Source of the DNA: Stylophora pistillata
Taxonomy: Eukaryota
Direction: 5' to 3'
Length of the DNA stretch: 64,000 nucleotides
Assembly (NCBI RefSeq): GCF_002571385.2
Contig: NW_019218339.1
Coordinates: 1-64,000, forward strand
Position numbers and translations under genes: made by a program
The notes under the pieces: model-generated
What the model saw: only the letters and a program-made list of their open reading frames with translations
Database searches by the model: none
What the model was told of the DNA's origin: nothing
Part shown: piece by piece, positions 26,185 to 63,010 of the stretch
How the letters are laid out: each line of letters starts with the position of its first letter
How positions within the stretch are numbered: the stretch's first letter is position 1

Positions 26185-26782
26185 ACTGTACGTTTAACTC
26201 GATAATACTCGGTGATGTGAAGAAACTGCTTCGAAATGAGCACTGGTAGCGAGTGTGATCTTCTTCGGTCACGTTCATAATATTCAAAGTCTTGTCCGTA
26301 ATGAAAATGCGTTGTGGATCATCGTAAATGACTTTGCTTCCAGTCATTGTTGAGTTGATGGCCAATCCGGCCCATTCATCACTGTTATAAGGTTGTTCTC
26401 TGGACCAGGTAAGCAAATGAAATATATCGGCTTGTTGTTGTTCTTGAGGAGTCAGCACATAATCGCATGGGAGTGCAACATTTAAACCAGCGACCACGTC
26501 GATTACATGGTTTGCTTGTTGCTGATAAGACCATTGAAATCCCTCTAAAACCATATAAGCCATTAGTCAGACATAATTCAAACCCGACGGCTTAAGAAAG
26601 TACCGACTACATACGGCAAACAGCTCAATATTAGCGACATGGTTTGAAAGTTTTACCCGCCGCTCGCTTAAAAGATACAATCAAACCAAACTCTGACAAA
26701 ACAAATTTCAACATCACTTACCTAGTAAAACTACACTGTTTAGAAAAAGTAGTAACACCCAGGCGGTATTGGAATCTTCCAT
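26185..26782 (-). CDS. Gene 2: signal peptide plus canonical Ig V-set domain (5' part only)
   Basis: Exon 1 26782-26722 (MEDSNTAWVLLLFLNSVVLL, GTAAG donor). Exon 2 26544-26185 (360 bp: VALPCDY..LLTWSRE..DHTRYQCSF, GTAAGT donor). Confidence 0.8.
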
Positions 26783-28287
26783 TCTTCACGCGATCTTCTT
26801 TAAGAGGAAGTAAGGCATGATCGAAAGCTCTTTGTATATTTATTTGTGTTAGCGACAAACTCTGCGGTCCCTCCTTAACTGACGTCAAACGCTTTCCCGA
26901 GCTATTGTTTAGAACTTTTCAATCATGCATAGATGATTATGTAAGCAACAGGAAATGAAAACATGCCGAGAATGACTGATACTGTTATTTGCTGTACACA
27001 GTGTACATGTTTGTCACTCTCTTGTATGTCTATTTCTGGCTCCAAATTTTTAGCCCCAGCCCTGGGGGACAATCTAAACATCTTGGAAGCCAACTTAACT
27101 GATGGTTTTTTTTTTTTCATTTTTATCCTTAAGTATTTATTTTGTAGTAATCGTTTAAAATGGTTAGCGGGTGGGTTTCGAAAGGAGTGAAAATTGTTTC
27201 TCAAGAATACTTGCAAAATCTAAACAGAAAAAGTCAGGTCGCACAGGTTTTTTTTTTAAAATGTGTAAAATATACGAGGCCGATATTGATCCATATTTGT
27301 CAAGGATCAAGGCATATAACGTTTTTGTTGGAAAATATAAGGTGTAAGGGTTGTCTGTCCAAACAAAATAATAACTGCTGTGGACTGTGTAACATTTGGG
27401 GGTAATTTTAATTGGAAACTAATCGACGACGCTGTGCTGTAGAGATGTCTTACTTTAGCTCGAGGCTGTGTTAATATCAAACAGTGTGCCTAGCTTGAAA
27501 ATTATATGCAAGTTTTAAATTTTGCGAATTTAGCTTGATCCGCAAATATTGGTTTCAAAATACACCGTGAATTAAGACGTCACAAAAAAATTTTTGTTAG
27601 TGCAATGAAAAAACTCGAGGGTATTAACAAGGATAAGTGGCAAGCTATCGGTTAGATTTCTTTGTTGCGTCAAATCTTCTACGAAGTGATCGATTACCTT
27701 CTAAGATTGTACAGAATTCAGTTAACTTTCCAAAATTCTTTTCGCAAATCTCAAAATCGCCAATTTGCAACATGAAACTAGGACAACATTTTCATGCCTC
27801 GGGTAATTATTGTGGGCAAAGCAGTTTTTTTTTTTAGCCTTTCCACATGTTTACCTTTTATGTTTTTCCTTTTGGAACAATAGCAGTAATGTGTGCTTTG
27901 TCTGTAAGAGATTTTAGTGAGACATCTGTGTGATTTCATTTCTCTTGTATTTGTCTCAGTGCGATTGTAAATCTGTGAGTTGGCGATGTCAGAGCGGCCA
28001 TGCCGAGTGAACGACTGAATGCAACGAAAACCAAAGAATTCCTTCATTCATTTGCAATAATTAGAACTAAGTTTTAAGCGGTAGGTTAGATAAGAATATG
28101 CAAGGTTTTTGGACCTTATTATTTTAAAAATAAAGTAGACCTTCATCAAAGATCTGACGTATGTAAACAATGCTTTTCAAATTTGTGCGTCGAAAGAAAG
28201 GAATTGAGATGACTCGGAAGATGATGACTAGCTTTATGAAAAGTGTTTTTGTAATTAATGTTCACAACTTGATTCTGTGGTTAGCAT

Positions 28288-28403
28288 TTTATCCTATTTT
28301 CGCCAGTTAAGGAAATATCAGGTGGCAAAATATTGATTCCACATAATTATCCTATTTTCGACGGTGAAGGAAATATCATGCGGGAAAATATTGACTTCCC
28401 ATA
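28288..28403. repeat. Two-copy ~58-bp tandem repeat in the gene 2/gene 3 intergenic region
   Basis: TTATCCTATTTTCG..AAGGAAATATCA..AAAATATTGA occurs twice. Confidence 0.6.
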
Positions 28404-28830
28404 ATGCTAATAAGTTTTATATATTCCGCAGCCTTGTGTTGCAAGTCATCATGAAGTGTCTCCATCTGGAAATAACACTGAAGGTGTGGTAAATTTTTTC
28501 TTAATATTTCCGGGTAGAACTTTGAATACCCCGCGCGCGTTAAATAGCTCGCGTTCGTCACGCATATGCTTTTCTTGAAAGCGAGCGTCACGGATTAAAT
28601 CCGTGGCGCTCGAGAGAAAAACAAAAGAAAGGGTACCGAAGTTGTCTTTTAGCAGAAGGCACGTACGTACACTGAATCGAGGTGGCCCCGCCTCAGTTGG
28701 ATCGAAAATTAATTGGTTTATGAAAAGATGGTTAATCCGGACGTGTGTAATTCTTGAGTTCTCATTTTCTTAAGGTGAACTTGAACGGCCGCCTCAAGTT
28801 TTAATAAGAACTTCTTGGTCATTGTTGATC

Positions 28831-31800
28831 ATGGATAACTCCCTGACAGTTTGGACGTTTTTTTCGCTATTTTGTGTGTCAGGTAAGGTGCAATGTAATA
28901 CCTCTTAAAACCTATTTTAATAGCCAAGTATCTTTTTTTTCCTTTTACTCACTTTTTAATCCCTCTCATTTTTCGAAGAATCTCTGTCTTGGACCATCAA
29001 ACAGCCCCGCAGTGTATACAGAGGATCACCCATCACACTAGAATGGACAATATCACTAACAACAGAAGAAAGGAAGAGAGCGGATCGCTTTTCTTTGATT
29101 CTCTTGGAACGTGAGAAGTTTCTTTACAGCAATCAGTGGCAGATCATGGCTGTTAAACAGTATTACAATGGTATTTATCAGGAAATCGACAATGAGGACA
29201 CTTTTGATGTGATTCCTGGAAAGGACATGGCACTCAAATTGAACAATGTCACGGACACAGATGCTTCCCGGTTTCGTTGCACATTTCTTAGCTCATTTGC
29301 ATCTCCGAAGAGTATCATAGAGGTGGAAATAGAAGGCGAGTCTTTGTCGTCTGTGGAAGTCTCTACTTTTAGATGTAATAGGTAATCTTTCAGGTGTACC
29401 CCTGACCTACTGCCTNNNNNNNATCATTATCTAACAGGACAGCGGGGTACTCTTCACACTTTTAATTGGGGATGTTATTTCTTTCTTGTTTTAGATTCTC
29501 CGATATACGTACGTCTTATGGACGGAACTACTCCCAATAGAGGCCGAGTAGAAGTGTATCGTAATGGATTTTGGGGCACCATCTGTAGAGACAGTTGGGA
29601 TATTCCGGATGCTTCAGTTGTTTGTCGAATGTTGGGTTACGCGGGAGCCTGGAAAGCTGGCTGTTGTACTGATTATCGGGGTGGGACTGGTCCAGTATGG
29701 CTAAGTGACATTTCATGTACAGGACAAGAGAAGTCTTTATTAGAATGTCGTCACAGTGGTTGGGGTGTCAATAACTGTGATCACAAAAAAGATGCAGAGG
29801 TCGTATGTTACAGCTCGCCAACAGTAAAACCATCTCACTTTTTCAGTGGACAAACCATGTCAGCAAGAACACAAAAATCTTTTTTTTCTAGCACAACAGC
29901 AGTTACATCCACATTGGCTCAGTCTATTTCGACACAGGTGCTTCCACCAATACCCTTCAGTCCAACATCAATACAATTCCAAACCCATATTGTTCGAGTT
30001 ACAGAAGCTATAGACGTATCTCCGAGTTCTTCGTCGTTGGCCGTCATGTCCAGCTCTGTTATTTCGTCCACAAACCCCAGTAAGTAGCCCGTGCAGTCGT
30101 TGTTCCAGCTCATTAACAACTGTCGAAATGCAATCACTTTCCAAGGCTTTGACATGAATATAGACGTTAAGTTGTGTTACCCCTTTGTTGTCAGTGTGGA
30201 ACGGCTCTCGATTAGTAAAATAAGTTAGATTCTGTGATCAATCAGGGACTTCCATGTGAGTGTGCTTAGCATAGAGATTAACCCCCAGAAAATGAAGATG
30301 AGAGGATACAAAAGAACGGTTTGAGGCAGACACTCACCACGCAGTTCTATTTTACAGACATGAACCATTAAATGATAAACAAGTCACTGTTTTATGACTT
30401 AATTGTTGAGCTCAACACCGAATACAAGTAGATACGTGTGAATTCGGCATTTTCGATCACAATATGACTTTTTTAAACAGTTGTGTTTATTGAGCTGCTG
30501 AATGGCGGTGGTCACCCAAATCAAGGTCGTGTTTCACTTTACTACAATGGCCAGTGGGGTACAATATGCCAAGATCATTGGGAGTTGAATGATGCCCATG
30601 TGGTGTGTCGTATGCTGGGATACCCAAGAGCTTTTGACTTTACCAACAGGACAGTCTTCGGTAGTGCTAACGATGGACCAATATGGTTAGATGAAGTCAA
30701 CTGCACGGGAAATGAGAGCACCCTCGCAGCTTGTCCACATGCTGGCTGGGGAAAAAGTAACTGTGATCACAGTAAAGATGTGGGGGTGAAATGTGACTTT
30801 AATTACACTGTGGAGGCAAAAGGTACGGCAATAAGCTAATACGATTATCAGATAATATTTGCAAACCGCAAATTCATTAATTCCTAGAAGTCAGCCAGTC
30901 CGTCAAGCAATCGATTTGTGCTTCGTAAGTTTTTGGTACCTGGGTGTTTCGACAAAGTCTTTAATGTCTGAAACTCTCTCTGCAGATGCAAGTTGCTCAT
31001 TTGACACTTGGTATTGCGGTTGGGAGAATGGACCAGGCAGCCAGGGATTTACATGGACCAGGAAGTTTGGTTCGACGATATCAAGTGAAACCGGACCATC
31101 CCAGGATCACACCTCTGGGAATGGTAAGGGATGCTTCATACCGAGGAATGTGAACGAGTTATCAACATGATGATACAATTAAAAATTTTTCGTGTGTATT
31201 TTAGTGTTAGAAAAAGCTTAGTTTTTGGTTCCACGTTCACGATAAGACGATTTACATTCTTTTATTCGTCGACGGAACTTAAAATCAACCGTTTTTTGGT
31301 TTGTTTGTTTCAGTATTGAATGTGCATGTAACTGTCGGAATCACTGATTGTTGTTTTTTTCTCTCCGCTAGTATCAGTAACTCCACCAACATTATTAATT
31401 GCCTAAGGGATGTCACGCAAAGCTTTTGCGTTACATCCAGGAATGACCATGACCACCCTTATTTCATTGTAGTTCTTTCCCCACTGCAGGTTTTTACTTT
31501 TACATTGAGGCATCTGGACGAAGCATGGGTGAAATTGCTTCACTCGTGTCTCCATATATACGAAGTGATGGAAACACCACGTGTATGGTATTCTTTTATC
31601 ATATGTATGGACAGTCCATTGGTACGCTCACAGTCAAGGCTGGAGATCAAGTTTTGTGGCAGTTGTCAGGCAACCAGGGAAATGCTTGGTACAGGGCAAC
31701 TGTACCCCTTAATTTCAATGCCACTTACAGGGTACGGCAGCTGATCTTTTCACGAACATACGTCACCTGCATGAAGTAAAGTATTTCATGACAAACGATT

Positions 31801-34800
31801 TTTTTCACGTATTTTACTTTATCCTTGTTTGGTTCAGGTGATGTTTGAAGGTGCTGTTGGTAGCACTGCACGCAGTGATATCGCTATCGACGATGTTGAG
31901 TTCCAGGGAAATACAGAGTGCGAGAAGACGGCTGAAACGTTAGGTTAGTGGACCGTTAAACTTCGAAATTATGCCATGGGACTAAAATAATTGTTGGTGT
32001 TACCAGGTACGATGTAAATGTAAAAGAGTTTCAGGTGTAACTAGACTCAGTGTTTTCATTAGTTTCCGCCAAGTGCTTCTGTCCTTGCCTTCTCGCTTAG
32101 AGGCACTGTGTTTGAGTGAAGAAAGCCTTGTTCCCTCAATCCAGAGGTTCGGGCTCAAGAATCGCTGTGATCGCCAGATGGAATTATTTATGGTCAGTTC
32201 AAATCTTCCACCACGCTTTTTGATGGCAGCTTCTTCCTGCCATTTGGTGATTTCGATCGTGTCACGCTTGAATACTATTATTAAATTTTAGTCATTTGAC
32301 GGTTTGTTTAATCAGTGGGCCACAATGAAAACTACCGGGCCACTGGTAATTACAAAGTATTTTTATCAGTAATGGTGTGCAGGAAGGTCAATTTGATGGC
32401 ACCGCACTTGTTAGACCCTTGGAAATTACCTTTCTTGATTAAAACTCACGGTCTCAAATATAATTTGGAAAGCTCGAACGAACGATTTTCAAAGATTTAG
32501 TTCCTCTTTGTTGGCATACATTCGCTCATATTCTCATTCTCTTTCCTTGTTTTCAGTCCCACCAAAAATCGTGTGGATTTCCCCAAATCGAACAGCTGAA
32601 CTTGGCAGTGAGGTTACGTTAGTATGTACCGTAATTGGTCTCCCCACACCACGTGTGATATGGAAGAAAAATAGAAGAGTTCTTTCGGGGAGTCAGGTGA
32701 CTGGTAACGTCACTCTACTGAATATCTCTCAGTCCGATATTGGCAGTTATGAGTGCTGGGCAGCTAATGATGTGGGCACTGACACCAGAGCTACAGTACT
32801 CGACGTTTTAGGTTGGTGGATTAATTTTTTTCTTGACTATTCCGGAGTGAATACATTGAAATTGCGTACATTTGATGAATCAGAAGTAGCATTGTTAAAA
32901 CTCAGACGAGTTGTGAACTTAGCAAATTTGAGGGCTCATTAATTTTGAATACCCAGAAAAGCAAACGTACTCTCCTCTACTTCTACAGAACGTTTTGAGT
33001 GTCTGGGAATTGCAAATAGTTTGCAGTAACGGGGCTGTTCTCTTTTTTGGAATGACCTATGCAAAGTGCTGAAACTGTGAGTGTTATGGATGAGAAGCGC
33101 AATCCAGACCAGATTTTCTCTAGCTTAGTTATTGTTCCCCAATCTAAAGATGGACATTCTATGAAATTAACTTCTCTTGTTTCATTCTCTGAAGGATCTC
33201 CGATGAAAATAGTAATCACCAGCAACGCGTCTTCGAATGTGGCAATTTAGGGGGACTCTGTTGCCATACGGTGCTGGTCATATGGCTACCCTGGTCCACT
33301 CTGTCACATATATCGCGAGGGTAATTTACTAGGCGCAAATAGAGGTGTTTATGTTATTGAAAACTTCACTACTTTGGATCAAGGAGTCTACATTTGCAAC
33401 TGCTCTAATGTCGCTGGTGCAGCGCAGGCAAACTTTTCCCTCGCTCTTTATAGTAAGTGGCTTGATGATTAGATTCGTTTTCTTAGTACAAACAAGTGGG
33501 AGAATAGTTGACTCCAAATGGCTTATAGTTGTTTTTTAGTATATCTAGTGTGTTTACTCGAGTCCTAAAATGTCATCCGTAGTAACATTGTTAACCAATG
33601 ATAATGATAATAATCAACTTATTTACGGAAGATAACCGTCAAAAGTATTTCAACTGATGAGCAAGTGGTCCTCTATCTTAAAGCCAAACTGCAGCATGCA
33701 ATGTGGAACTGGAAGGGAAAGGTCCAAGACTTACTTTTTACCTTACAGAGTCCCCAGCTATCCACACCATTTATCCAGCCTATCAACTTGTGAACGAAAC
33801 TGATGCATTTGAATTTTTCTGTAATGCGACGGGAAATCCAACCCCGACAATAACATGGTGGAAAATTGGCGACACTAGCAAAGTATATTCCACAGAACCA
33901 ACACTGGCAATACAAAATGCTTACAAATCAGACTTTGGCAGCTACCGATGTACCGCAACAAGTATTCGCGGTGAAAACGTGTCAGCTGTTGCGCGGGTGG
34001 AGATGGATAACTGTGAGTAGAATTTCTGATAATACGATAGTCACAAGATAGAACATGTTCTGGCTTAGACGGAGGCGAAAATTCATCGTGAGCCTTACGT
34101 CAGTTAGATTTGGGCGTTAACATCGATTTATACAGGTAAACAATATGATAAAGAAAGAAATGATAGTGTATCACCAAAGTAAATAAGACGGCAGAGTTTA
34201 AGTTGGGCGCAAATTATCAGTGCCTATAACGGTGTTTGTCAGTTAATGCACTCTCCCCCTCCTTCCACCCCTCCCCAATGATTTACTCCTCCTCCCAACC
34301 CCCCTCCCGAATGATTCACTTTGTATCAGAACAGTATCTGATATGCTTAAATATCAGTAAGGAAAAGCATCAACCTTGATGGCGACTGATAATGTTTTTT
34401 TTTCGAAGAAGTCTTTCAAAGCCACTGCGTGATCTGATTTTCAAGATTTGTGTTTTTACATGTTTGTAGTTTCGCCGACAGTCGACTACATTTGCTGTAA
34501 CGTGACTATTTTGGAAAAAGAAAGAAGAAATGTTACAATGTACTGTAATGCCACAGGAAGACCAGCGGCTCAGCTGTCCTGGATAAGAGTTGTAGATGGT
34601 AAAACATTGGTCACTGGGAATACTTTAGTAATCACAGCTGCTGGTCGGTCGCATCGTGGTGAATACAGATGCGTCAGTGATAATGGAGTGCGGAATCCTG
34701 TGTCCAAGTCGGCATACGTGAACGTGCTTTGTAAGTTCAGAAAGTTTCTTGTTGAAGTCACCTAGGCAATTATTGTTCGAGGTGTCTTTCTCGTGAGTCA

Positions 34801-39886: not shown

Positions 39887-39925
<39 letters not shown>

Positions 39926-40257
39926 TTGTTGTTATCTTCCTGACCAACGTCGCTTTTTTATCATCTCCTATCCAGCGCGAGCACGTGGGATGATTTGTTA
40001 TTATACATGCATTGTCTCTTTTAATAGCAGTCAGGGAAATATGCTGCATCCACGACAAATGATGGCAGTAAATGCTCTTCGGTAAAGTAGGTAACAGGTT
40101 TTCAGATAAAATGAAGCTGAGGAACTCTCTAAAAAAAGTTAGTACGTCCAACAGGTTTGGTCTTTTCCGGTGCCGGAAACAAGGGATATTTTAGTTTAGT
40201 TCAAACACGATTCCTAGGAAGACCATGTAAGATGATACGATTTCGTGTATAAATAAA

Positions 40258-40260
40258 GAT

Positions 40261-40296
<36 letters not shown>

Positions 40297-40331
40297 CGAT
40301 GATGATGACGATGATGATGACGATGATGATG
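40258..40331. repeat. (GAT)n microsatellite
   Basis: About 24 GAT/GAC units. Confidence 0.95.
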
Positions 40332-52200: not shown

Positions 52201-53370
52201 CGACAAACTACAGCAGTATCGTTAATATCCCAATTATCATCGCATACTGTACCCCAAGTACCATTGTAATAGATCTCTACCCGTCCGTAACCAGGAGAGT
52301 CGCCATCTCTCAAGCGCACTATCGGAGCTGTTGAATAAATAAATAAATAAATAAATAAATAATGATTTAACAATGGACATCCACTGGGTGGCTATTCTTG
52401 TCCACTGTTCCAGATCGAATTGGAATTTAGAATGTTGGTTTTTGCGGAGGGAGGAAAACCGGAGGACCCGGAGAAAAACCCTCGGAGCAAGGACGAGAAC
52501 CAACAACAAACTCAACCCACATAAGACGCCAGGTCCGGGAATCGAACCCGGGCCACAGTGGTGGGAGGCGAGTGCTCTCACCACTGCGCCATCCCTGCGC
52601 CATCCCTGCTCCCCTGAATTGGATGGAAAGAACGCATTCTTAATATGATTCAATCCTGCAGTCATTTTACTTCTCTCATAAAAGAAATTCAGTATTTTTA
52701 TAGAAATAAAAGGGCACTTTTCTCCTCTCTTACTAAGCAACCAGTGCGTGATGCTCGACAATGAAAAGGAGTCCGATAGAATCACACGTACACGGCTCAA
52801 ATGCATGCATGGGGAAAACTAGAAGGTTTGTTTAAAAAATAAATACTGAGGAAAGAGAAAAATGTAGTGCTGACATACCGGGTGGAGAGGTTGGAGTGGT
52901 CGAGCTCTGCATCACAGTCAGTGAAGGTGAACTTGGAGATACCACTGAAGGAACGACTATTTCATAAGAGCTACCTGGTAACATTTTCACTTGAGATGCA
53001 GGGGAAGTAGAAATTCGTAAGGGTCTCTTTGTGGGTTTCTCTGTTGCTGGACTGTGACAAATAACTTCAGCATCTTGGGTATGATCGCAGTCATGGACAC
53101 CCCACCCGCTATGTTTACATTCGGATAAAGTGTTCTCTTGACCCGTACAAGATAGATCACTCAACCAAATCGGATCACGGCCCCCTGATTGTTTGGTGCA
53201 GCAACCAGCTGTCCAAGCCCCAGGGAATCCCAACATCCGACAAACAACTGATGCGTCTGGCATATCCCAGCCATTCTTACAGATAGTTCCCCAACGTCCA
53301 TTTCGATATACTTCTACTCTTCCCCTATTAGGAGAGGCTCCACCCGTAAGGCGAACTTTTACAGGAACCC
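49211..53370 (-). CDS. Gene 4: six SRCR exons
   Basis: Each exon has GRV(E/S)..WGT(V/I)C..C(R)M(L/M/T)G..LDD/LSD/LDN..C..DA/V motifs. Confidence 0.9.
52333..52615 (-). mobile_element. tRNA-derived SINE with (TTTA)n tail
   Basis: Minus strand TGGCGCAGTGGTGAGAGCAC..GGTTCGATTCCC, body TGTGGGTTGAGTTTGTTGTTGGTTCTCG..CTCCGGTTTTCCTCCC, tail TATTTATTTATT. Confidence 0.85.
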
Positions 53371-56300
53371 CTAAAACAAAAGAGAGAACGACAACGTGAG
53401 AGTGAGTTTATCCGACTTACCACTTTAACCCAAACCAACCAAACGTTTAGCTTAATGCTAACTGTTCGCAAGAAAGTTTGCAATGCACAAGTTGCAAGAA
53501 TGGATTTGATGAGCGTTCGAAGACATATAACAACATCATAACATTGCTAGGGACGGCAATGAGAAACGAACAAACAGAAAAACAAGCCAAGTAAGTTGTA
53601 TGATGAAATCAATGTTCCGAAATATATGATACAAGAATAACTAGCATTAAAAAAAATTAAAAGCAAAAAAGGTAAAACGACACATGCATCAAATCCAAGC
53701 TTTGCATGCATGGGTTAAGGTGACAGGGAATTTTCTTGGCGTGTTTCTTCCGCATGGGTGTTGTTAGACAGACATGTACCTTCCATTTCCACCTGAATGA
53801 TACTCTTGGGTGCTGCAAATGAGCTGAGAAATGTGCAGCGAAAGCGAGTGGCATCGGTGTGTGTGACATTTTTTAGTCTGAATGCCATGTCCTTTCCAGG
53901 AATCACTTCAAAAGTGTTCTCACTTCCAACTTTTTGGTGAATTTCACCAGGATACCCTTTCACAGCCATCATCTGCCATTCGTTGCTGTAAAGAAACTTT
54001 TCACGCTCCACTATAATTAAAGAAAAGCGATCTGCATTCGTTTTCTCTTCTGTTGTAAGTGATATTGTCCATTCCAGTGTGGCGGTTGATCCTTTGCGAA
54101 CATTACTAGGTTGCTTGACGTCCCATTCAAGAGAATCTATTGGTTTGAAAATACAAAAAAGAGAGTCAAATATGCCTATAAAATGGCGCCGTAACAGTTA
54201 TACTCGGACATTAATGTACTAATTTTGTTAATTTCGATAATACCAATAAAGATGTGGAATATAACGAAAGAAGACGCCTCTCTTAGAATAGACTGCCAAG
54301 TGCGGTTGTCAAAACGCGGGAAGACGAAGTGATTCAATTTACCTAACTTGAGTGACGCCTCATCGGTGGGCATCAACCCACAAACAACCGGTTACCTGAA
54401 CCCCCATGTAACCAAGCTCCTACTCGTAATTTTTTACTCTTTTATCCGAAGAGAGAGAGAAAAAATTGTTCTCAGGCTAAGAACCAAATAATTGTTCAAC
54501 AATATATTATTTATTCAAAATATATCTCACTAATGTAATCTACAGCTCATTTTTAAATAATCTTAACAACCAGCTGCTATTAAGCAGGAAATGAAACCAG
54601 ACTCGTGGAGAGTGGCGAAAATCGAGGTTAAATCAAGCCTTTTTTTTTCTTTCTCGGCTATCCTGTTGCCTGGACGTAGAGTTTAGCAATATAAATACAG
54701 CGACAAATGTCCAAATTGATGGCATCAACATCATAAGCTGCAGGTGCAATATTAAATTTCTCTAACGTTTTAACATTTTGTGTGCTAAAATGAAGGTCAG
54801 ATAGGATTTCATCTCGGCAAACAATGCAGGAAATTTGCTTTACAAATCCGTGCTACTGGCCCAAAGCTACCATTCAAAATAACTCATAAGCATGATGTAA
54901 ATCCGAATAAAACACGAAACAAACAAATGTAGTCACGTAGAATAAATTTATCACTCCGCATAAATTTATCATTTTCGCATGTCGAATTTTTGTCGGAGTT
55001 ATGAACACGTTTCCTGACACTTTATAAAGCAGCTTATAATTTAGAAATAAGAGGAAAGCGCCACAGATTTCGCGTTATCGTCCCGGGTTTGAATACTAAA
55101 ACGAACGATTCGCAAGAATTGGCAACTTGAACTATAGAGTAGCAAAGAAATAACACGAAAGTTTGTTTTCGATGTTCACATCAGTACTTCACTAAGTTGT
55201 CATTTCATGGAATCATTTTGTCAGATTTACACTTGAAATTACTCCCCATAATCATGAACTTGTCAGCTAAATAAACATCTATAAGTCTGCATGTTTTTCA
55301 CTCAAGCATTATTAACAAGTATGCAAATTATTCCAAAGGTTAATACTTCGACAAGAATCCCTAAAATAAATGAAATAGTTCATCGTAGTTCAGACAGAGA
55401 GGCGGCATCATTCGTGAAAAATTCGGTGCTATCATGTTGCAAGGTTGAAACAATCGTTGCTCAGTACCTTTCAGCGTTATGTGGCGAACAGTTTAGGGAC
55501 GATTGTGAAAACTACGTAAACATTTGCATACGGGTTCGAAAACTTACCTGTAAATGAAATCTGTGACCACAGGAAGAAAACCAGCAGAAGATGAACAACC
55601 ATCGTCACTTTGGAAGAGTTCGATTAAATAATAAAATCGATTTTGAGTAATAGAGATTGACGTGAACAGTTTAACCTTCCTGATGCGAAATAATTCCGTT
55701 TGTAATGTAGATGAGACACTGACGTAGTTATTAAGATATGAACATACACTGAGGAATGTGCACACCTCTTAACACTGAACAAGAGATATGCTAAATCAGT
55801 CGGTAATGATCTATTTTTGTCACGCCAGCTTGTATCCGGCTGATGTCGTAATCCGTCACAGATCCTTCTAGAGTGGGCGAAATTTTCAAGGACATGTTTA
55901 TGTGTCCTTTAACTTTTTGTTATGTATGGTGTGTTTATTCTGTTATGGTCGAAAGAAAAATAAAAGGAAATCATCGATGGGAAAGATATTTTCGAAATCT
56001 ATTGGCTGTCACGCGCCCGTAAACGGCGCAGGTTTTCCCTAAACGGACCGCTTTGGAGCTGATTGATGTGCGCGTCACGTTCGCTTCGGAGTGAACGAAA
56101 ACTTCACCGTCTTGGGGAGAGGGGGGAAGGTTGCTTTGCTTTCAGCTCCTTAGGTTTTACTGTATACTTTTTTCTTCGAAAATACTGATTTTGTTTTATT
56201 TGTTTTTCCTTACCAAATAATGAGTTATACATCATGAGAACGATTTTAAAAAGAATAAAGTTTTTTGTTCGAAATGTCGGTTCGATACTATATGTCAGTC

Positions 56301-56797
56301 GAAAAACATTTTGATAATTTCTCTTGGTTTAATAATCGAAAGGAAATTTCGAAAGTCTAGGAATATGTTACTGCTTTTGTAGTTATATACATTAAATCTG
56401 TAAACAAACCATAAAATTGCATCGTAGTCGTTGTTTCAACGTGTGGTCTCTTGAAAACGCCAAAACATAACAAAAAAAATAAAATAATAATAATAATAAT
56501 AATTTAATATTTATATTGCGCAAATTAACGTTGGGATATGATCAAAGGCGCATCAAAATGTTTTGTGGAAGACTTAACAGTCTTAACAGACTACTTGCAG
56601 CAGTTTACAATTTTTTGTGAAGGCTAATTGTAACAGATGCCCCCAATTTCAGTAAAGTCAAATAAGAATCGAGTTTCGTGATCACGTCCGATGTAAGTAA
56701 GGGCGCAACCAGCCTACTCACACATTCTCAAATTTTTAAAGGGCTACCAGGGAAGGTTGCTATAAGGAAATTTTAATGACCTGTTCATAGCTTTGAG

Positions 56798-56827
56798 TAT
56801 AGTTAGTAGTCCCCTCTACTAACTATG
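56798..56827. mobile_element. 30-bp hairpin element with 7-bp TSD (copy 1)
   Basis: CTTTGAG|TATAGTTAGTAG-TCCCCT-CTACTAACTATG|CTTTGAG. Confidence 0.65.
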
Positions 56828-57458
56828 CTTTGAGTTACGTTTTCTTTATGAGTCGGCGTTGTTTTCTTTCCGTGTAAGTTGAGGTTTTTTAGGATAAATT
56901 TTAGGGAGATTTTGTTCAAATTTCCTCATCGAAGTTTCGTCGGTTTCTCTGCTTAAATTTGGCTGGAGTAAAAACTCAAACTGTGCGGTATAGAAAAACA
57001 CAATTTACCTTAATCTAGGTACTTGAGAAGTTTTTCTTTGTTTCGTAACTTATTTTCTTTGGTCCTATTCTTACGACATCTCTATATATTTTCGTTTTTC
57101 TCCATCACTCATAAACGGGACAATTTCCTACACAAAGGATGAATGCCCAAATCATTTTGGAGAATTAAGCAATGAAAGCAGTGGCCATGTAAAATTTATG
57201 CCTTAAAGAATTACTTTGTCTTTATGTTTCATCCCCCCCCCCCGAGTTGCTCTTTGTGAAGCCTTTTAACATAACGAAATGTGACGATTTCATAGCTGAT
57301 TTCCACATACGCAAGCGATACCACCACTGATGTACTCATTCCCATGCTTGCACTTGTTCTTGAATTGAGCTCTCGAACTAATTTCATGAACGTCTTGCGA
57401 TTCATACGGAAATTCTCTTTCCATTCCTCTTCAGCAACCCTTCCCTAAACAAAGTCGT

Positions 57459-58240
57459 CTACATCTACATCTATATTTATTAGTCTTGCAAAGGGGGGCC
57501 ATCACGCAAGACATAAAATAACAATAATAATTAACAAAATGAGATAAAAAATGTAAAANCCCCTAATTGCATCTTTAAAATTAATTAATTTATCAATTCC
57601 TAAAACACTATTTGGTAAGGAGTTCCAGTCTTTGATTGTTCTACAATAAAATGAATTCTTATACGTTTCAGTGTTCGGTTTTATTTCTATGTATTTATCC
57701 TTATGATATGATCTTAATTGACGGTTTTTCTTCTTGATATAATTTGGGAGTTCCATCTGGACTTCGCCATGGAGAATCTTGTAGAACATGGTTAAACGTG
57801 CAGACTTTCTTCTTTTCTGTAATGGAGGCCAGTCCAAAACATTTAGAAGATTTGACACAGTCCTTGGTTTACGCTCCCAACAATTTTTTACAAAACGTGC
57901 AGATCTTCTTTGAACAGCTTCAATTTGATTTATGTGTTTGTCCTTCCAGGGGTTCCAGACTGTGCTTGGATACTCGAGATGCGGTCGAACTAAGGATTTA
58001 TATGACATTTCTTTGATAGATTCAGGACATTTTCCAAGATTCCTTTTTAAGAAACCCAAAGCTCTGTTTGACTTATTAGTCTTCATATCAATATGACTCC
58101 AGTCTAGTGAACTTGACAATTCCACCCCAAGGTATGGTTAGTGTGACGCAGACTCCAAAGTATGACCCATTAGCTTGTAATCGAAAATTATTAGATGAGA
58201 TTTCCTAGTAACTCTCATAACAAAACATTTGTTGGGGTTA
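57459..58240 (-). mobile_element. 5'-truncated LINE 3' end (CR1/L2-group-like)
   Basis: YLGVELSSSLDW..KSNRALGFLKRNL..YKSLVRPHLEY..IEAVQRRSARFV..SFYCRTIKDWNSLP; AATAAA and (TAGATG)n tail. Confidence 0.85.
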
Positions 58241-59019
58241 AATTGCATGAGCAATTTTTTTGCCCATTGTTCAATTGTAGAAAGATCAAAATAATATTAC
58301 AAGAGAAGAGGGTCTGGTGCATAAAAACTATACTATATATACTCTACAGCGTTTTATTTTTTTCTTTTTCGCACGACTGTGCAGCCTAGTAAAAAGCCCT
58401 TGAGGACACCTCTCGTTGGCTTTGAAACTTATCCGATATGTGACAATTCCCTTTCAAGATCGGCGCGGCACAACTTTTGTCTGTTACAGAAACTGACCCA
58501 GAATCAATGTGTTATGAGCGACCTAAAGCCCCCCCCGCAGAATATCTTAATGTTTTCTTTCGACGTTATAAATTCTTTGCCAAAGGTTGTCGAGCAAGCT
58601 GGTCCTTGCAGTTGGCATCGAATTCAAAATTAGAAGCTTTTATAACTTCCAATTTAAAATTTTTTAATTATATCGCCGCGTGCGAATTTTTAAAATCGTT
58701 TACTGTACCTTAAATAATTTTAGGAGTACGTTTGTGGTTTATTTCAAAATCCTTCGTAATAAAAAAAATCCCTTTTCGAAACGAAAATGCTCTAAATTAC
58801 GGGAAAATCACCGTCTAGCCCACAGCAGACTGTTTGACACGATTAGCGTCTGAATTAACATGTCAAACATTGATTAAAGTCAGAAAAACGCTCTTAAAAC
58901 CTAAGGAAATTGTATCAGATAACATTCTGTCGATGACCTCTGCGGATGGAAAGCAAACGACATCAGAACGAACTCAGTAATTATTTAACTTTTAACGGCG
59001 TATTAAGGCAGCCGCTGAG

Positions 59020-62000
59020 ATGGCTCTCACCAAACCTGTTAGGTCTTGCATGTTGCAGAACATGTACCGTTGTGTGATTATTTTTTTGAGTTTGACGACG
59101 CTATCTCTTCCAGTATCAGGTTTGTGCTTCAGCACCAAAGGCGCCGTGAACTTTGGAATTCCCAACAACAAATCATAGAAGGCTACTAAGAAGAACTTTT
59201 TTTTCTTTTGCAGCGTTCCACTGGAACAAAGAACCTACAACTGTTAAAGGAATACTCGGTGAAAACGTTACACTTGAATGGAATTTTACCATTTCATCCG
59301 CCAACGAAACTTTGGACAGTTTTGTTTTGTTGCGATCCTCCTCAGATGATATGATTAAATATAGTCACGGCAAGGGTATAGTGATCTACCAAAAATTTAA
59401 AGGGAAGGTGGCGATGTTGGCCGCTGGAACTCCGACATTTTTATTAATCAACTTACAGAGAGAGGACGACAAAGCTGACTTTTGCTTGAAGGTCTCCACA
59501 AAGATCCCATCCAAGTCAACAAATGACGATGGAATTATTCATTTGCCTAACCCCAGATGCGCTAAAATTGAAATCTTGGGTAAGATTAGTTTGTACTCTC
59601 TCCATTGAATCGAATCGCACATTTTAAATCTCTAACTAGTTGTTTTTCTTCCTTCTTCTGTCTAAAGAATCATAGTAAAATGGAATTTACTACTTTATTG
59701 GATCGAAATTAGATTTCGAGTACACAAAACATCTTTCATTTTCTATTTATGGACGAAAGGTCAAGTTTGATGATTCGTTCCTCTAGATCATATCGATAAT
59801 ATCGAGACTGGCAGGCCTATTTGTTTCACAAATCTAAAAAAGAGAAGAATGGATGATATTTAAAACGGTATCGCAAACAGTAATGATAATGTACTTAGAG
59901 TTTTTTAAGCTGCACAATGAAGAACAGTTTCCGTATGCTGACGGATGATTCGACAAAACGGAACTTAAACAGATCGACCCATTGGCTAAAAACGAGATTA
60001 GCTTGAGTCAAATAACAACAAATCTTGGTTATGATTACTTTTCCCATTTATTGAATCAATATTCAGATTTTGAAGTCTACTTCAAACTTTTATCTTAAGG
60101 TAAACAGCACAAATGACAATCATAGAATCTACTGCAAACATCGGGAATAAAACAACATAAAAGCGAAAGGACACCGTCTGTAAATTTCAATTTCCTTCCA
60201 TGTTAGGTGATGTAGTTTGTCAGAATTCGTCGTCAGTCCAATAGTAACCGATCTTTCGTATCCCGTGCAGGTTTGTTTGTTTGGTTTTTTTTTTTTTTTT
60301 CTTACGTTACCTGCGAAATTGTTCGTCCCAAGTTGATTGATTGATTGCTGTTCATGTATAAGAGTAACTGACACAGAAATATAGCCTCACAATAAGGTGT
60401 CTCATACAAAAATCACGAAGTCTCCCTATTCCAAAAACCTACTCGTCCGAAAACTACATTGAAGTTTCTAATTGTAAGATAATCTTCCCATTCACTTTCT
60501 CCTCTATTGAACTTATGGTTAGCTTAGTCTGACAATCTTTTAAAATGGAATAATTATCTAGTGTCGAAAACGTGGAAAAGTTGTACCACGGTTACTTATC
60601 AAGTCACGGGTTAGTCACTTCATTTTAGAGTTTTGCTACAACCCTTCGGTTACATATTACTCACAGTGTTTATTGGAATAAAATGACACTAAAGGCGTTC
60701 TATTCATAGTTAGTAGAGGGAGCTACTAACTATGTTCTATTACAGCCTCGTGGAACATGGCCATATATGAGCAAAACACGTGCCGCATAAATGTTGTTTG
60801 GTTATGTAATAGATCAACGAAATCACTTAGAATGTCAAACAAATTAAAACTAATTAAGGTATCGTCCAGTTTCCAACACTAGTAGTCCTTTATTGATTTG
60901 ACCAATATTCGGTAAAATGACTGTAAAGAAACAGTTGATCATAATTCTCATATCTATTTTCTCTGATATCGCATGTCAAACTAACGAGCGAACTAAAAAT
61001 TTCTCCCGATGAAAATTTTCCAGACATATCTTGCATATCATGACAGCTAAACAGTTAAAAAAAATTGAATGTTTGTTTAGCCAAAAGTTAGAGGCCTCCC
61101 TAAACCGTTTTGGTAAGACTCGTTAGCCATTCCGCGTCAAATTTCATCACTTCCTGTGCTCACGGCCAGCCTTCTTTTTTAACTTTACCTGTGGACTCTT
61201 CTCCTTATTTATCATTCTCCATTCACATTCTCGTTTCAAACGCAGACAGACAGAAAAGACCTCCGCGCGCAATCGAAATCAGGAAATGTTGAAGCGATTG
61301 AAATTCAACGACCAGGATGTTTTGCTGCAAGATATCCATCGGAGCTAAAGAATACAGTTGGAAAACACATTTTTGTAAATAACTCGCGTGCTTTTCAGTA
61401 TTTTACCAAACGTTTTGATGAGCACTATAGTTAAAATAATAATACCCGGGTTGACATAGAAAAAAAACTGTCCCTCGAAGGTCTACCGTATCCTTAATCG
61501 GTCGCTTATGTCGCTAAGGCTTGGCTTAATTAATTCTTGAGTGATGCCTTCTTTTTTTGATATTCACTCTGGAGACTCTCTTCAATTCTATGCTTCAATG
61601 CTTCTGAGTGGATCTGCGAATCAATGACGTTTTCGGGGCTTTTCAAAATTCCATATTTTTTATAGAACGTCCCACAATTGTTAACATCTCGAAAAACTCC
61701 ACCTGGACATCCACTGAGGGAGACGATTTGATCATCACCTGCCATACAACTGGCATACCAACTCCTAATGTTACGTGGACAAGATCAGGCAAGAAAGCCA
61801 AAAACTTTGGACCATCATCTTCCTTAACATTAAAAAATATAACCAGAGAAGAGGACGGCTTATACTGGTGCATGGCAGATAATGGTCTCAGTACAGCCAC
61901 AGCTTCTGTCAGGGTCATCGTTAAATGTAAGTATAAAGTTGAAAACAGAGGTAAATTGGGCGATTTTCCTTCATATTTAGTCTTCAAGATTCACCGTTAA

Positions 62001-63010
62001 ATGTGTAGAGGAAAATATTAGATGCCTGAAAAGTGTCAATGTAAACCTTGGAGAAAGATATGACAACAGTACTTTATTCCTTAGATGAGGAATGTTGTTG
62101 ACATGGATAACAATTTGATATAAAAAAAAAAAAAAACAAATTTACTGATTGGTTGAAATGGGATAAGAGAAAATAACATAAGCTATACGAAGGAAACAAC
62201 GAGAAAGAGCCCCACGACTTTAACCCACGAATGATGCAGGTCTATAATCACAAATATCCAACCACAAAACCCTATTCATTTTAAATGTTATGAATAAGGG
62301 AATATAAATTGTAGTGTTTGAACAAGACCTCAGAATCTTTGTTCAGTGTAATCGTTGCGCAGCACTTTTTAAGTTACGTCTCTATTTGAAGCTGTTAGAT
62401 TACAACACTTTTTGAACGTGGGAAAAGTATTTCTTTAAACGTAAGATCCCATACGAAGGACATGATGCGCTGCTGATCAATATCTGTTCCTTAAATTGAT
62501 GGTGTAAATTTCGTACGTTCCTTTATTAAAATATAGTATCCGCTTATTGTTCTTGTTATACAATTGGATGGTACATCCTTGAGACAATCTGGAAGCCCCT
62601 ATGCAAATACATATCCAGATTTTCAAGTAATAGCGCTTTGGTCCACTAAGGCGTGAGGCCTACAGAAGTGTACCAAAAGGGAAAGTAAGCCCCAAATTCT
62701 ACTTCTAACACTGTCCAATATTGATCCTTTAAACTAAAATTTAACAACGTTTTAGTTCCACCGTCAATAGAGTATATTACCAATGATACCAATGTGAATG
62801 AGACTGATGATGTCACTCTGTTCTGTAACTCAACTGGAAACCCTGTTCCAAAAATTACGTGGGTATTTGGCTTGGATGGGAGGATCATTGGAACTCAAGA
62901 AACTTTAACCTTGTCTCATGTCAAGAGAAACCAATCCGGAACGTACTGGTGTAGTGCAGCCAATGGTGTGAAGAGACCAAGGAACGACAGCGTGCGTGTG
63001 ACGATAAACT
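59020..63010 (+). CDS. Gene 5: IgSF protein SP-atypical V-I-I (3' end beyond window)
   Basis: Exons 59020-59119 (hydrophobic signal VIIFLSLTTLSLPVS), 59214-59579 (V-like, VTLEWNF..DDKADFCLKV), 61666-61926 (ITCHTTGIPTPNVTW..DGLYWC), 62756-63010 (LFCNSTGNPVPKITW..SGTYWC). All phase 1 and open. Confidence 0.85.
60705..60734. mobile_element. 30-bp hairpin element with 7-bp TSD (copy 2)
   Basis: TTCTATT|CATAGTTAGTAG-AGGGAG-CTACTAACTATG|TTCTATT. Confidence 0.7.

Follow-up and report, generated by a model that had tools for sequence, protein, structure and literature searches.

Organization of the locus

The window (the whole 64,000-nucleotide stretch of Stylophora pistillata DNA analyzed here) holds four genes whose layout resembles a mirror image (Table 1). 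Genes 2 (reverse strand) and 3 (forward strand) diverge with their ATGs 2,050 bp apart, genes 4 (reverse) and 5 (forward) diverge with their ATGs 3,418 bp apart, and genes 3 and 4, which encode mosaic serine proteases, converge with 3.6 kb between their stop codons (38527–38529 and 42176–42178, respectively). A short first exon, a hydrophobic leader by sequence reading in 4/4 cases, is followed in genes 2, 3, 4, and 5 by a V or V-like exon of 360, 357, 357, and 366 bp, and all eight of these exons are in phase 1. Direct reading of the sequence agreed to the base with the ATG spacings, stop spacing and V-exon sizes given in a preliminary description of this DNA. Its account of IgSF-rich surroundings with pseudogenes was also borne out, the latter being likely pseudogenes.

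Table 1. Features of the four-gene locus (window positions unless the contig is named).
Feature	Position	Strand	Basis or remark
Gene 2 V exon, 360 bp, canonical Cys-Trp-Cys core	26544–26185	-	Pfam V-set, homology
Gene 2 exon 1, ATG 26782, hydrophobic leader, GT donor, phase 1	26782–26722	-	Sequence reading
Gene 2–gene 3 intergenic region, 2,049 bp	26783–28831	.	Single copy in genome (1 match, itself)
Gene 3 exon 1, ATG 28832, hydrophobic leader, phase 1	28832–28883	+	Sequence reading
Gene 3 V-like exon, 357 bp	28979–29335	+	Sequence reading, AF2, Foldseek
7-N run in intron 2 of gene 3, no exon touched	29416–29422	.	Sequence reading
Gene 3 SRCR, two exons	29495–30079, 30481–30822	+	Pfam SRCR E 5.6e-33, 4.9e-35; splice sites as in gene 4
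Gene 3 MAM, three exons	30986–31943 (inner limits approximate)	+	Pfam MAM E 1.7e-16, 8.3e-4
Gene 3 Ig (I-set type) exons 1–4	32557–32811, 33195–33452, 33749–34012, 34470–34730	+	Pfam
Gene 3 Ig (I-set type) exons 5–7	about 35200–35486, 35789–36061, 36158–36424	+	Pfam
Gene 3 trypsin-like domain, two exons	37253–37489, 37973–38529	+	Pfam Trypsin E 7e-14, 3e-44
Assembly gap, intergenic or in 3' UTR of gene 3, edge of high-copy repeat	39134–39154	.	Contigs, depth
Gene 4 trypsin-like domain, two exons	43081–42845, 42722–42176	-	Match to gene 3, RNA contig
Gene 4 Ig, seven exons, each with a gene 3 partner	43303–46705	-	BLAST pairing, shared splice sites
Gene 4 MAM, three exons	47119–48791	-	Pfam MAM E 1.7e-15
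Gene 4 SRCR, six exons	49211–53370	-	Pfam SRCR in 6/6 pieces
Gene 4 in-frame TAA in third SRCR exon, as read in assembly	51544–51546	-	Sequence
Gene 4 V-like exon, 357 bp	54136–53780	-	Sequence reading, match to gene 3
Gene 4 exon 1, ATG 55602, hydrophobic leader, phase 1	55602–55548	-	Sequence reading
Gene 4–gene 5 intergenic region, 3,417 bp	55603–59019	.	Contains two dispersed repeats
Gap within a repeat	57559	.	Sequence
Gene 5 exon 1, ATG 59020, hydrophobic leader, phase 1	59020–59119	+	Sequence reading
Gene 5 V-like exon, 366 bp	59214–59579	+	Sequence reading, AlphaFold, Foldseek
Gene 5, first two I-set exons	61608–63042	+	Pfam
Gene 5 TM-like exon	69822–69998 of contig	+	Sequence

The mosaic protease genes

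Genes 3 and 4 share one domain order, namely a predicted signal peptide, a V-like Ig domain, SRCR domains (two in gene 3 and six in gene 4), MAM, seven Ig domains and a trypsin-like domain. The V-like exon of gene 3, which has a Trp instead of the first pin Cys and a predicted GC rather than GT donor, is modeled by AlphaFold (AF2) as an IgV fold (pLDDT 92.6) with VHH and antibody V domains as its top Foldseek matches (TM 0.64–0.74). The first pin Cys is likewise replaced by Trp in gene 4. A Pfam search at E ≤ 0.01 found no Ig family on the V-like exons of genes 3, 4, and 5, so that V-set was recognized by Pfam only in gene 2. The Ig exons of gene 3 carry Pfam Ig families in 7/7 pieces and have phase 1-1 sites in common with gene 4. 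In its trypsin-like domain the His, Asp, and Ser motifs are all present, and alignment to PDB sequences places Gln-Ile at the activation site and Gly where trypsin has the S1 Asp.

Self-BLASTN aligned the two protease genes in 14 collinear inverted blocks (29019–38517 vs. 54096–42185) of 70–88% identity. The exon frames match as protein in 15/15 pairs (56–82% amino acid identity), and splice sites and phases are common to both genes at most exon limits. The V-like exons are 69% identical and the trypsin exons 72%, the runner-up to the latter in a search of the whole assembly reaching 44%. By sequence comparison, the two genes are inverted paralogues that correspond exon by exon, are placed tail to tail and are mutual nearest relatives within the entire assembly. 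Introns and UTRs of the two genes were not alignable by self-BLASTN, and their first exons have no similarity. Summed exon by exon, dS is 0.87, dN 0.21 and dN/dS 0.24, and in the tree each gene groups with its own orthologue-like sequence (support 97/94 and 100/99). The duplication would thus be old, with both copies apparently held by purifying selection.

A polyA RNA run (X11) that covers the trypsin exons of both protease genes shows each to be transcribed and spliced. In the trypsin region of gene 3 the polyA depth is 97–173 over the exons and 0 in the intron, and a fraction of 0.33–0.53 of the words of this gene was found in RNA runs from four studies. A polyA contig of gene 4 lacks the 122-nt intron 42723–42844, removed exactly at the predicted sites. 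The frameshift read in the trypsin-like exon of gene 4 is only apparent: the assembly is one letter short after 42509, and the extra letter occurs in 4/4 sequencing runs. The four additional SRCR exons of gene 4 derive from tandem duplication of a two-SRCR unit (50114–51090 vs. 51262–52286). Because of the in-frame TAA in the third of its SRCR exons, gene 4 may either have lost some of its function or leave that exon out of the transcript.

The flanking receptor-like genes

Gene 2 has a leader like that of its Desmophyllum orthologue P0265 and a V exon that matches Pfam V-set with E 1.8e-5 and 25.3 bits (cut-off 26). With P0008, a V-Ig-TM transcript, this exon shares 80% identity, and it falls in a clade (support 97/95) with Nematostella proteins of the 'CAR' and 'A33' types, named by NCBI 'coxsackievirus and adenovirus receptor' and 'cell surface A33 antigen'. 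Its relatives P0008, P0041, and P0043 have an N-terminal canonical V-set domain followed by a single Ig domain, a TM segment and a tail, like the CAR/CTX-type V-C2-TM receptors, and the top full-domain PDB matches are CAR D1 (E 0.009–0.06). The similarity to CAR is nevertheless weak, and, unlike those receptors, gene 2 is represented in this window by leader and V exons alone; a search for Ig, TM, and tail exons 3' of the V exon found none in this assembly. On its sequence, gene 2 is therefore a 5' portion only, leader plus canonical V exon, belonging to a CAR-like family of V-Ig-TM receptors. The N-terminal V-like domain of the proteases has its nearest relative in this V domain (31% identity between genes 2 and 3, E 1e-15), the two types being already split in Nematostella.

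Gene 5 comprises a nectin-like V domain, at least six Ig domains and a TM segment, and extends beyond the window, with further Ig exons at about 65.6, 66.9, 67.5, and 68.4 kb of the contig. The first pin Cys of its V-like exon is replaced by Trp; the AlphaFold model is an IgV fold (pLDDT 82.1), and its top Foldseek matches are nectin-1 D1, CD155 D1, CRIg, TIGIT and CAR.

BLASTP detected no similarity between the V exons of genes 2 and 5. Desmophyllum has sequences of both the gene 2 and the gene 5 type, at 58–79% identity to the window, and gene 2-type V domains occur also in Acropora, Montipora and Nematostella. Genes 2 and 5 thus seem to represent two families already apart in other scleractinians and, on this evidence, are not duplicates of each other.

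Origin of the mirror layout

The locus is probably the product of an old inverted duplication of a protease gene that lies between two IgSF receptor genes of different families, in an IgSF-rich neighborhood. One mosaic serine protease gene of ~10 kb would have been copied in inverted orientation long ago, gene 4 would later have expanded its SRCR domains from two to six via tandem exon duplication, and the outer genes 2 and 5 would have stood outside the duplication. The symmetry is therefore that of an inverted protease pair within an IgSF-rich, probably conserved neighborhood. Since the flanking receptor genes are not copies of each other, as the proteases are, only the inner half of the mirror is genuine, and the arrangement is rather unremarkable. 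The preliminary description had suggested an old inverted duplication of a two-gene module, which holds for genes 3 and 4 and fails for genes 2 and 5. A module of receptor plus protease, the outer genes of which later diverged past recognition, finds some favor in the mirror-like layout, in the shared start of 4/4 genes, where a leader exon precedes a 357–366-bp IgV-fold exon of phase 1-1, and in the remote homology of gene 5 V to the V family of genes 2, 3, and 4 (hhalign 93.5%, E 2.3e-7). However, the V exons of genes 3 and 4 retain 69% identity yet those of genes 2 and 5 lack any BLASTP match, the outer genes differ in architecture, and both outer families are separately conserved in other scleractinians. 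This version is largely refuted and most improbable; the separateness of the families and the missing BLASTP match argue that the module was not duplicated, and copying was confined to the protease gene.

The mirror orientation rests on scaffolding, since the gap at 39134–39154 (605 bp beyond the gene 3 stop and 3.0 kb from that of gene 4) is the sole join of the two arms and is bridged by none of the listed contigs of four runs. Contigs on the left end at 39133, with 26–118 further letters that never reach the right flank; those on the right begin at 39176 or 39223. The right flank opens in a high-copy repeat, depth over 39101–39300 being 55,000–149,000 vs. about 110–180 nearby, and the same assembly contains the one-letter error at 42509. 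A misjoined or misoriented arm is nonetheless quite unlikely: polyA contigs flank the gap at similar depth (151 vs. 123–217), with none in the intron of gene 3, a pattern that fits a 3' UTR crossing the gap, and the gaps of the window range from 1 to 494 N, which would suggest paired-read scaffolding. With 70–88% identity the arms are, moreover, genuine paralogues rather than the artefact of a collapsed or palindromic assembly. The gap lies in intergenic DNA, so no reading frame is affected.

The head-to-head arrangement of both gene pairs could also reflect co-regulated sensor/effector pairs, in which a receptor-like gene and a divergent protease gene share a bidirectional control region and are kept together by selection. 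The gene 2–gene 3 spacer is single copy, the V domain of gene 2 is homologous to the V-like domain of the proteases, and V domains of this receptor type often bind each other. There are also hints of conserved linkage: the Desmophyllum gene 2-type and gene 5-type sequences have locus tags four apart (OS493_024251 and 024255), apparently on one contig, and V exons of the gene 4 and gene 5 types were found on equal-sized contigs (14,856 and 47,202). These data suggest that neighborhood linkage is kept in other corals; from the Desmophyllum linkage it follows that the flanks are not a random neighborhood, which leaves room for a functional tie. Microsynteny may, however, also be conserved neutrally. 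Classical bidirectional promoters span less than about 1 kb, so that ATGs 2.05 and 3.4 kb apart are wide for one. Self-BLASTN found no sequence in common between the two spacers, that of genes 4 and 5 containing repeats with at least 14 (56466–56656) and at least 19 (57458–58289) copies elsewhere in the genome, and no Ig, TM, or tail exons accompany the V exon of gene 2 in this assembly. Co-regulation is accordingly rather unlikely.

Comparison with allorecognition genes and other proteases

The preliminary description likened the locus to the Hydractinia allorecognition complex (ARC), a likeness that the analysis did not support. As in the ARC, an IgSF gene cluster includes likely pseudogene fragments, V-set folds are overlooked by Pfam, and an aromatic residue (Trp in genes 3, 4, and 5) takes the place of the first pin Cys, which is replaced in domain 1 of Alr proteins as described by Huene et al. 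(2022; PMC9546547). In contrast, genes 3, 4, and 5 retain the second pin Cys, and the at least six Ig domains of gene 5 differ from the one to three plus an Fn3-like domain described for Alr, no Fn3-like domain being identified at this locus. No equivalent of the proteases figures in the description of the ARC. Pairwise identity among V-exon variants of a close relative is 94–100% (per-cluster means 97.7–99.4%), with no hypervariability in the variants examined. That this locus is part of a comparable coral allorecognition complex is extremely improbable.

The proteases are probably secreted as zymogens, and no TM anchor was seen in either. Docking of their V-like, SRCR, MAM, and Ig modules to a ligand or surface would carry the C-terminal protease to its substrate, and activation would require cleavage of the unusual Gln-Ile bond. 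The Gly in place of the S1 Asp of trypsin argues against Arg/Lys specificity. The closest solved sequences in the PDB are enteropeptidase, TMPRSS2, kallikrein and crayfish trypsin (E 1e-35 to 1e-40). SRCR and/or MAM domains precede a chymotrypsin-fold domain also in vertebrate neurotrypsin, enteropeptidase and TMPRSS2; genes 3 and 4 differ from these in their seven Ig domains and V-like domain, their Gln-Ile rather than Arg/Lys-Ile activation bond, and the Gly at S1.

A related architecture was found in five of six cnidarian resources (PMC5119243, 2016), to which genes 3 and 4 add the N-terminal V-like Ig domain and MAM; the passages of that study on the architecture give neither gene layout nor a paralogue pair. 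In Nematostella, trypsin-MAM and trypsin-SRCR proteins, the former belonging to a clade expanded in anthozoans, join trypsin to the same modules (Babonis et al., 2019; PMC6767649). Unlike genes 3 and 4, these are presented there with no mention of Ig domains, and the text of that article never uses the word 'immunoglobulin'. The Nematostella protein P0036 (A7SDB2), from a truncated gene model, combines V-like, MAM, and Ig domains.

Layout of the Locus and the Gap at Its Center

The locus consists of two divergent gene pairs, gene 2 with gene 3 and gene 4 with gene 5, in which the inner genes (3 and 4) encode mosaic proteases arranged tail-to-tail. The mirror layout put forward in the preliminary description (divergent ATGs, each gene beginning with a leader exon and a V exon of 357–366 bp) is borne out by direct sequence reading, and exon 1 and the V or V-like exon are in phase 1 in genes 2, 3, 4, and 5. 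The ATGs are 2,050 bp apart in genes 2/3 and 3,418 bp apart in genes 4/5; bidirectional-promoter pairs are recognized by correlated expression and by divergent starts separated by under about 1 kb. A literature search, the supplementary lists of PMC5119243 and PMC6767649 excepted, found no paper describing the four-gene layout. As a genome finding the layout is ordinary: an inverted duplicate pair within an IgSF-rich region accounts for the mirror.

Coordinates of the four genes and of the central assembly gap
Feature	Strand	ATG	Exon 1	V or V-like exon	Gap	Position relative to stops	Basis
Gene 2	-	26782	26782-26722	26544-26185 (360 bp)			sequence reading
Gene 3	+	28832	28832-28883	28979-29335 (357 bp)			sequence reading
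Gene 4	-	55602	55602-55548	54136-53780 (357 bp)			sequence reading
Gene 5	+	59020	59020-59119	59214-59579 (366 bp)			sequence reading
Gap					39134-39154 (21 N)	605 bp beyond gene 3 stop 38527-38529; 3.0 kb from gene 4 stop 42176-42178 (-)

The 64-kb window forms the start of a contig of 197,898 bp (assembly size 398 Mb), has a GC content of 29–45% and contains seven N runs, three of which fall within the four-gene region (29416-29422, 39134-39154, and 57559). The second of these touches no exon, so that the reading frame is unaffected; it is the sole N run separating the gene 3 arm from the gene 4 arm, and the mirror orientation therefore depends on it. Four sequencing runs were compared over 36701-42700: X1 and X6 (DNA-like, treated as DNA because introns are retained in their contigs), X9 (random-primed RNA) and X11 (polyA RNA). 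None of the contigs listed from these four runs spans the gap. The alignment of the left contigs ends at 39133, though 118, 78, and 26 further letters are present, and the right contigs start at 39176 or 39223. Depth reaches 55,000–149,000 in 39101-39300 vs. about 110–180 in adjoining single-copy DNA, so that the gap must border a high-copy repeat. The polyA contigs of X11 flank the gap on both sides at similar depth (151 on the left, 123–217 on the right, reaching 39769), and X11 depth is 0 in the gene 3 trypsin intron, giving no sign of DNA carry-over at that spot. These contigs fit a gene 3 3′ UTR that crosses the gap, which argues for continuity. Inversion of the 3.9-kb contig between N runs 25457-25476 and 29416-29422 was also considered and rejected, since in gene 4 the V exon and the SRCR exons have this same arrangement and no gap lies between them.

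An Inverted Pair of Mosaic Protease Genes

Self-BLASTN aligned genes 3 and 4 in 14 collinear inverted blocks (29019-38517 vs. 54096-42185) of 70–88% identity, and at the protein level all 15 exon frames pair between the two genes (56–82% identity). The homology is a collinear reverse complement between V exon and stop codon, as in an inverted segmental duplication; no alignment between the two genes was obtained for the first exons, the introns, the 3′ UTRs or the DNA upstream. At most exon limits the two genes agree in the aligned position of the splice site and in its phase. Pfam recovered two SRCR domains, MAM, trypsin and Ig families in all seven Ig pieces of gene 3, and MAM, trypsin and, in six of six SRCR pieces, SRCR domains in gene 4, whose four extra SRCR exons derive from tandem duplication of a two-SRCR unit (50114-51090 vs. 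51262-52286, 73–75% identity). In the whole assembly the trypsin exons of genes 3 and 4 are mutual best matches (72%), the next match being at 44%. Summed over unjoined exons (every search was run exon by exon, with no spliced protein assembled), dS is 0.87, dN 0.21 and dN/dS 0.24, with per-exon dN/dS values of 0.13–0.45. On these values the duplication is old, and purifying selection acts on both copies.

Cnidarian mosaic proteases combining SRCR, multiple Ig and C-terminal trypsin domains have been described (Neubauer et al., PMC5119243). In terms of the available portion of that paper, gene 3 (two SRCR, seven Ig, trypsin) and gene 4 (six SRCR, seven Ig, trypsin) fall within this class, an architecture read from separate exons whose order is collinear and whose splice phases are compatible in both genes. 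Trypsin-MAM and trypsin-SRCR proteins are likewise covered in the available text of Babonis et al. (2019; PMC6767649), the trypsin-MAM clade being expanded in anthozoans. The locus of genes 3 and 4 thus belongs to an already-known kind of mosaic protease and arose by inverted duplication of a single gene.

The preliminary description had proposed, as one of two readings, the inverted duplication of a two-gene module. This stands for the protease gene, which is duplicated (69% identity between the V exons of genes 3 and 4), but not for the flanks, as the V exons of genes 2 and 5 gave no BLASTP alignment. The mirror is accordingly half a duplication, with a duplicated central pair and flanking genes that were not duplicated. 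The spacers between genes 2 and 3 and between genes 4 and 5 share no sequence; the former is single copy in the genome, and the latter carries dispersed repeats at 56466-56656 and 57458-58289 that make up about 1.0 kb of its extra size. The second of these repeats has at least 19 genome copies (77–96% identity).

Transcription and Integrity of the Proteases

RNA runs from four studies contain 0.33–0.53 of the sampled words of 29423-39133, which by estimate about equals the exon share of this interval. X11 covers the gene 3 trypsin exons, extends through 600 nt or more of the 3′ UTR and leaves the intron empty. For gene 4, a 3,031-nt X11 contig lies on 41004-42700 and continues into the upstream trypsin exon with 122 nt absent, exactly the intron (42723-42844) predicted from splice sites; the matching X6 and X9 contigs retain these letters. 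Both genes are therefore transcribed and spliced.

Two apparent defects in gene 4 bear on its integrity. In the last exon, a one-letter deletion in the assembly splits the trypsin frame (42509-42510). All covering contigs, in four of four runs (two DNA-like, two RNA) from three studies, contain one extra letter after 42509, so that the frameshift is an assembly error or a private allele. The other is an in-frame TAA at 51546-51544 (-) in the third of the six SRCR exons, where the tandem twin has a Glu codon; it could be a real nonsense change, lie in a skipped exon or be another assembly error. This exon is probably of phase 1-1 like its neighbors, in which case skipping would preserve the frame. 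A search for near-identical ORFs to it gave 374 matches at E ≤ 1e-20, the best just 79% identical. In gene 3, the V-like exon has a GC donor (GCGAGT, 29335-29341) vs. GT in gene 4, and an alternative GT donor 48 nt downstream is also frame-keeping.

Predicted Action of the Protease Domain

The trypsin family (PF00089) is recognized with E values of 7e-14 and 3e-44 in gene 3 and 4.3e-13 and 1.9e-22 in gene 4. The catalytic His, Asp, and Ser motifs (TAAHC, NDIAL, GDSGGP) are intact in the ORF translations of both genes, which on this basis encode S1 chymotrypsin-fold serine proteases; their closest solved sequences are crayfish trypsin, plasma kallikrein, enteropeptidase, and TMPRSS2. In both, the Pfam trypsin profile starts at IVAG and is preceded by Gln (WSPQ|IVAG; 37253-37320 and 43081-43010), so that the Arg/Lys-Ile bond of zymogen activation is missing and the activating cut is predicted at Gln-Ile. 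Both also have Gly under the S1 Asp of crayfish trypsin and plasma kallikrein (38330-38370), and the same holds against enteropeptidase. As read from the sequence, the Gln-Ile bond and the Gly at the S1 Asp position suggest unusual activation and non-basic specificity. Genes 3 and 4 have a leader and no TM segment was found in them, so both mosaic proteases are probably secreted. The protease domain is preceded by a long series of V-like, SRCR, MAM, and Ig domains, which suggests that it is positioned through binding of a target.

The V Exons

The gene 2 V exon has the canonical Cys-Trp-Cys core and is the only one of the four with a Pfam V-set assignment (E 1.8e-5, 25.3 bits, cut-off 26). Genes 3, 4, and 5 have Trp (TLEW) in place of the first Cys and keep the second, and their leading V-like exons gave no Pfam Ig family at E ≤ 0.01. 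At the level of models, structure prediction settles the V fold of the gene 3 and gene 5 exons. The gene 3 model (30-row alignment) has a pLDDT of 92.6 and its top PDB matches are antibody/VHH variable domains (TM 0.64–0.74); the gene 5 model (13-row alignment) has a pLDDT of 82.1 and matches nectin-1 D1, CD155 D1, CRIg, TIGIT, and CAR. The gene 3 model (28981-29334) also contains a 9-residue helix (residues 28–36) between predicted strands two and three, which by our own assignment would be B and C, the position occupied by CDR1 in antibody V domains.

The V exons of genes 2 and 3 are 31% identical (E 1e-15), and those of genes 3 and 5 align with E 0.001 over 60 residues. Profile-profile comparison indicates that the gene 5 V family and that of genes 2/3/4 are remote homologues (93.5%, E 2.3e-7, 110 columns). 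A profile of three related V exons searched against 1.84 billion representatives gave 71 matches at E ≤ 0.001; against metagenome contigs, 366 pattern-matching stretches included no confirmed relative. Full-domain matches within longer proteins are of two kinds, gene 2-type and protease-type, the latter represented by Nematostella A7SDB2, in which MAM and Ig domains follow a V-like domain whose first Cys is replaced by Trp. In a maximum-likelihood tree, in which long branches are flagged for Nematostella rows, gene 2 and the CAR-like proteins form a clade (97/95) and genes 3 and 4 fall in another (86/90). This tree and its Nematostella members indicate that the two V types split before the divergence of sea anemones and stony corals. 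The possibility that gene 2 is a recent local copy of the gene 3 5′ end was rejected, since the two types are already separate in Nematostella.

The Flanking Receptor Genes

Gene 2 is related to a family of V-Ig-TM receptors of stony corals and Nematostella with a canonical V-set domain (Cys-Trp-Cys; P0008, P0013, P0041, and P0043). P0008, a transcript-sized ORF of 366 aa with a Pfam V-set score of 43 bits, consists of a leader, a V domain that shares 80% identity with that of gene 2, one Ig, TM, and tail; P0013, from Montipora, has V, four Ig, TM, and tail. Two gene 2-type proteins of Nematostella are annotated by NCBI, one as "coxsackievirus and adenovirus receptor" and the other as "cell surface A33 antigen," and among solved structures the best full-domain relative of the gene 2 V exon is CAR D1, a weak match (E 0.009–0.06). 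Two further proteins, P0042 and P0046, were rejected as full-length orthologues, being unrelated Ig-repeat proteins. In the available part of Huene et al. (2022; PMC9546547), it is stated that no V-set domain was known to the authors outside bilaterians except in Alr.

In this assembly gene 2 comprises a leader and a V exon only, the latter open and with a good phase-1 donor. Searches of the window minus strand with P0008 and P0013 (tblastn) found no Ig, TM or tail exons; with relaxed settings the best tail match in the window had E 0.09. The rest of the assembly likewise yielded no such exon, P0008 having no match in it past residue 266. A scan for hydrophobic stretches over 1–28.8 kb of both strands gave one match, 3178-3327 (-), with no minus-strand Ig exon upstream. 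Gene 2 is either a gene fragment or spliced to an unrecognizable exon; its complete relatives have Ig, TM, and tail. Gene 5 extends past the window, with Ig exons at about 61.6, 62.7, 65.6, 66.9, 67.5, and 68.4 kb and an exon (69822-69998) encoding a hydrophobic stretch of 21 residues and, after it, basic residues, as in a TM segment. On this exon content it is a type I IgSF receptor. Other corals contain 12 relatives of its V-like exon at E ≤ 0.001 (41–71% identity).

The resemblance to the Hydractinia allorecognition complex (ARC) suggested earlier is not supported at this locus, where the architecture is different, one pin cysteine is kept and proteases are included. The ARC, as presented in the part of Huene et al. 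(2022; PMC9546547) available, is a cluster of single-pass receptors with one to three unusual Ig domains from which both pin cysteines are missing. In Alr proteins the V-set domain 1 is without both pin cysteines and usually without the Trp, and the architecture consists of one to three Ig-like domains, an Fn3-like ECS, a TM helix, and a tail. Compared with this description, genes 3, 4, and 5 lose only the first Cys and gene 2 is canonical throughout; gene 5 combines a V with at least six Ig exons and a TM-like exon, gene 2 is incomplete, and genes 3 and 4 are proteases.

Conservation and Variability in Other Corals

In Desmophyllum pertusum, gene 2-type OS493_024251 (KAJ7371576; P0265) and gene 5-type OS493_024255 (KAJ7371580; P0126) are orthologue-like over the leader plus V; they are four locus tags apart and each is listed on a 1,237,823-bp contig, so they probably share one contig with three gene models between them. 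In a close relative, gene 4-type and gene 5-type V-exon ORFs occur on contigs of equal length (14,856 for P0100 and P0125; 47,202 for P0102 and P0300), equal size being only a proxy for the same contig. Read with the same proxy, gene 2-type or gene 5-type V exons occur on contigs as long as those of SRCR exons that rank among the best matches to gene 4 SRCR exon 3 (70–72%), with lengths of 138,818, 760,483, 684,609, 1,167,054, and 1,145,884. No equal-size contig match was found between gene 2-type and gene 3-type ORFs among the cluster members listed (15 of 130 and 15 of 23). These hints favor a neighborhood conserved in other corals and are silent on orientation and co-regulation.

Among the V-exon variants listed for the close relative, gene 3-type rows comprise 8 distinct variants in 15 (9 of 118 columns variable, mean pairwise identity 98.1%), gene 4-type rows 3 in 12 (2 of 118, 99.4%) and gene 2-type rows 9 in 13 (10 of 118, 97.7%), leaving out the truncated P0104 and two short ORFs, P0116 and P0119, that are in the cluster but unrelated. 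In this rough comparison, whose rows are no population sample, nothing like hypervariability is seen.

A Possible Receptor–Protease Link

Genes 3 and 4 are two expressed paralogues in which five types of binding module are attached to a protease of unusual activation bond and S1 pocket, which makes them reasonable candidates for a recognition-coupled protease role. To our knowledge, corals have no well-defined recognition-coupled protease systems, complement-like genes excepted. The adjoining receptor, whose V domain is homologous, and signs of a neighborhood kept in a distant scleractinian allow a concrete hypothesis to be framed, which we regard as highly improbable: that the gene 2-type receptor and the mosaic protease form an ancient linked recognition pair. 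V domains of the CAR-like receptor class pair with one another. The altered V-like domain of the protease might then dock onto the homologous canonical V of the CAR-like receptor, and this V-V docking would tether a protease of non-trypsin specificity to particular cell surfaces, the conserved block acting as a proteolytic switch. If this were true, corals would have in this block, made up of CAR-like receptor, protease(s) and nectin-like receptor, a switch for cell contact or microbe sensing.

Gene 1 and Retroelement-Like Repeats

Gene 1 (12950-25460, +) consists of arrayed Ig exons that repeat as tandem units of about 5.1–5.4 kb, with matching pairs such as 17136-17397 vs. 22525-22786 and 21493-22028 vs. 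23621-24157 (95%). No leader, V or TM exon was found for it. Its exons resemble Ig domains of gene 2-type receptors and several matches carry stops; from its sequence, gene 1 is probably a pseudogene array. Related repeat copies occur at 3071-3718 (+) and 47338-47977 (-, within a gene 4 intron), with 69% over 571 bp, and contain ORFs resembling what we take to be the endonuclease part of a retroelement.
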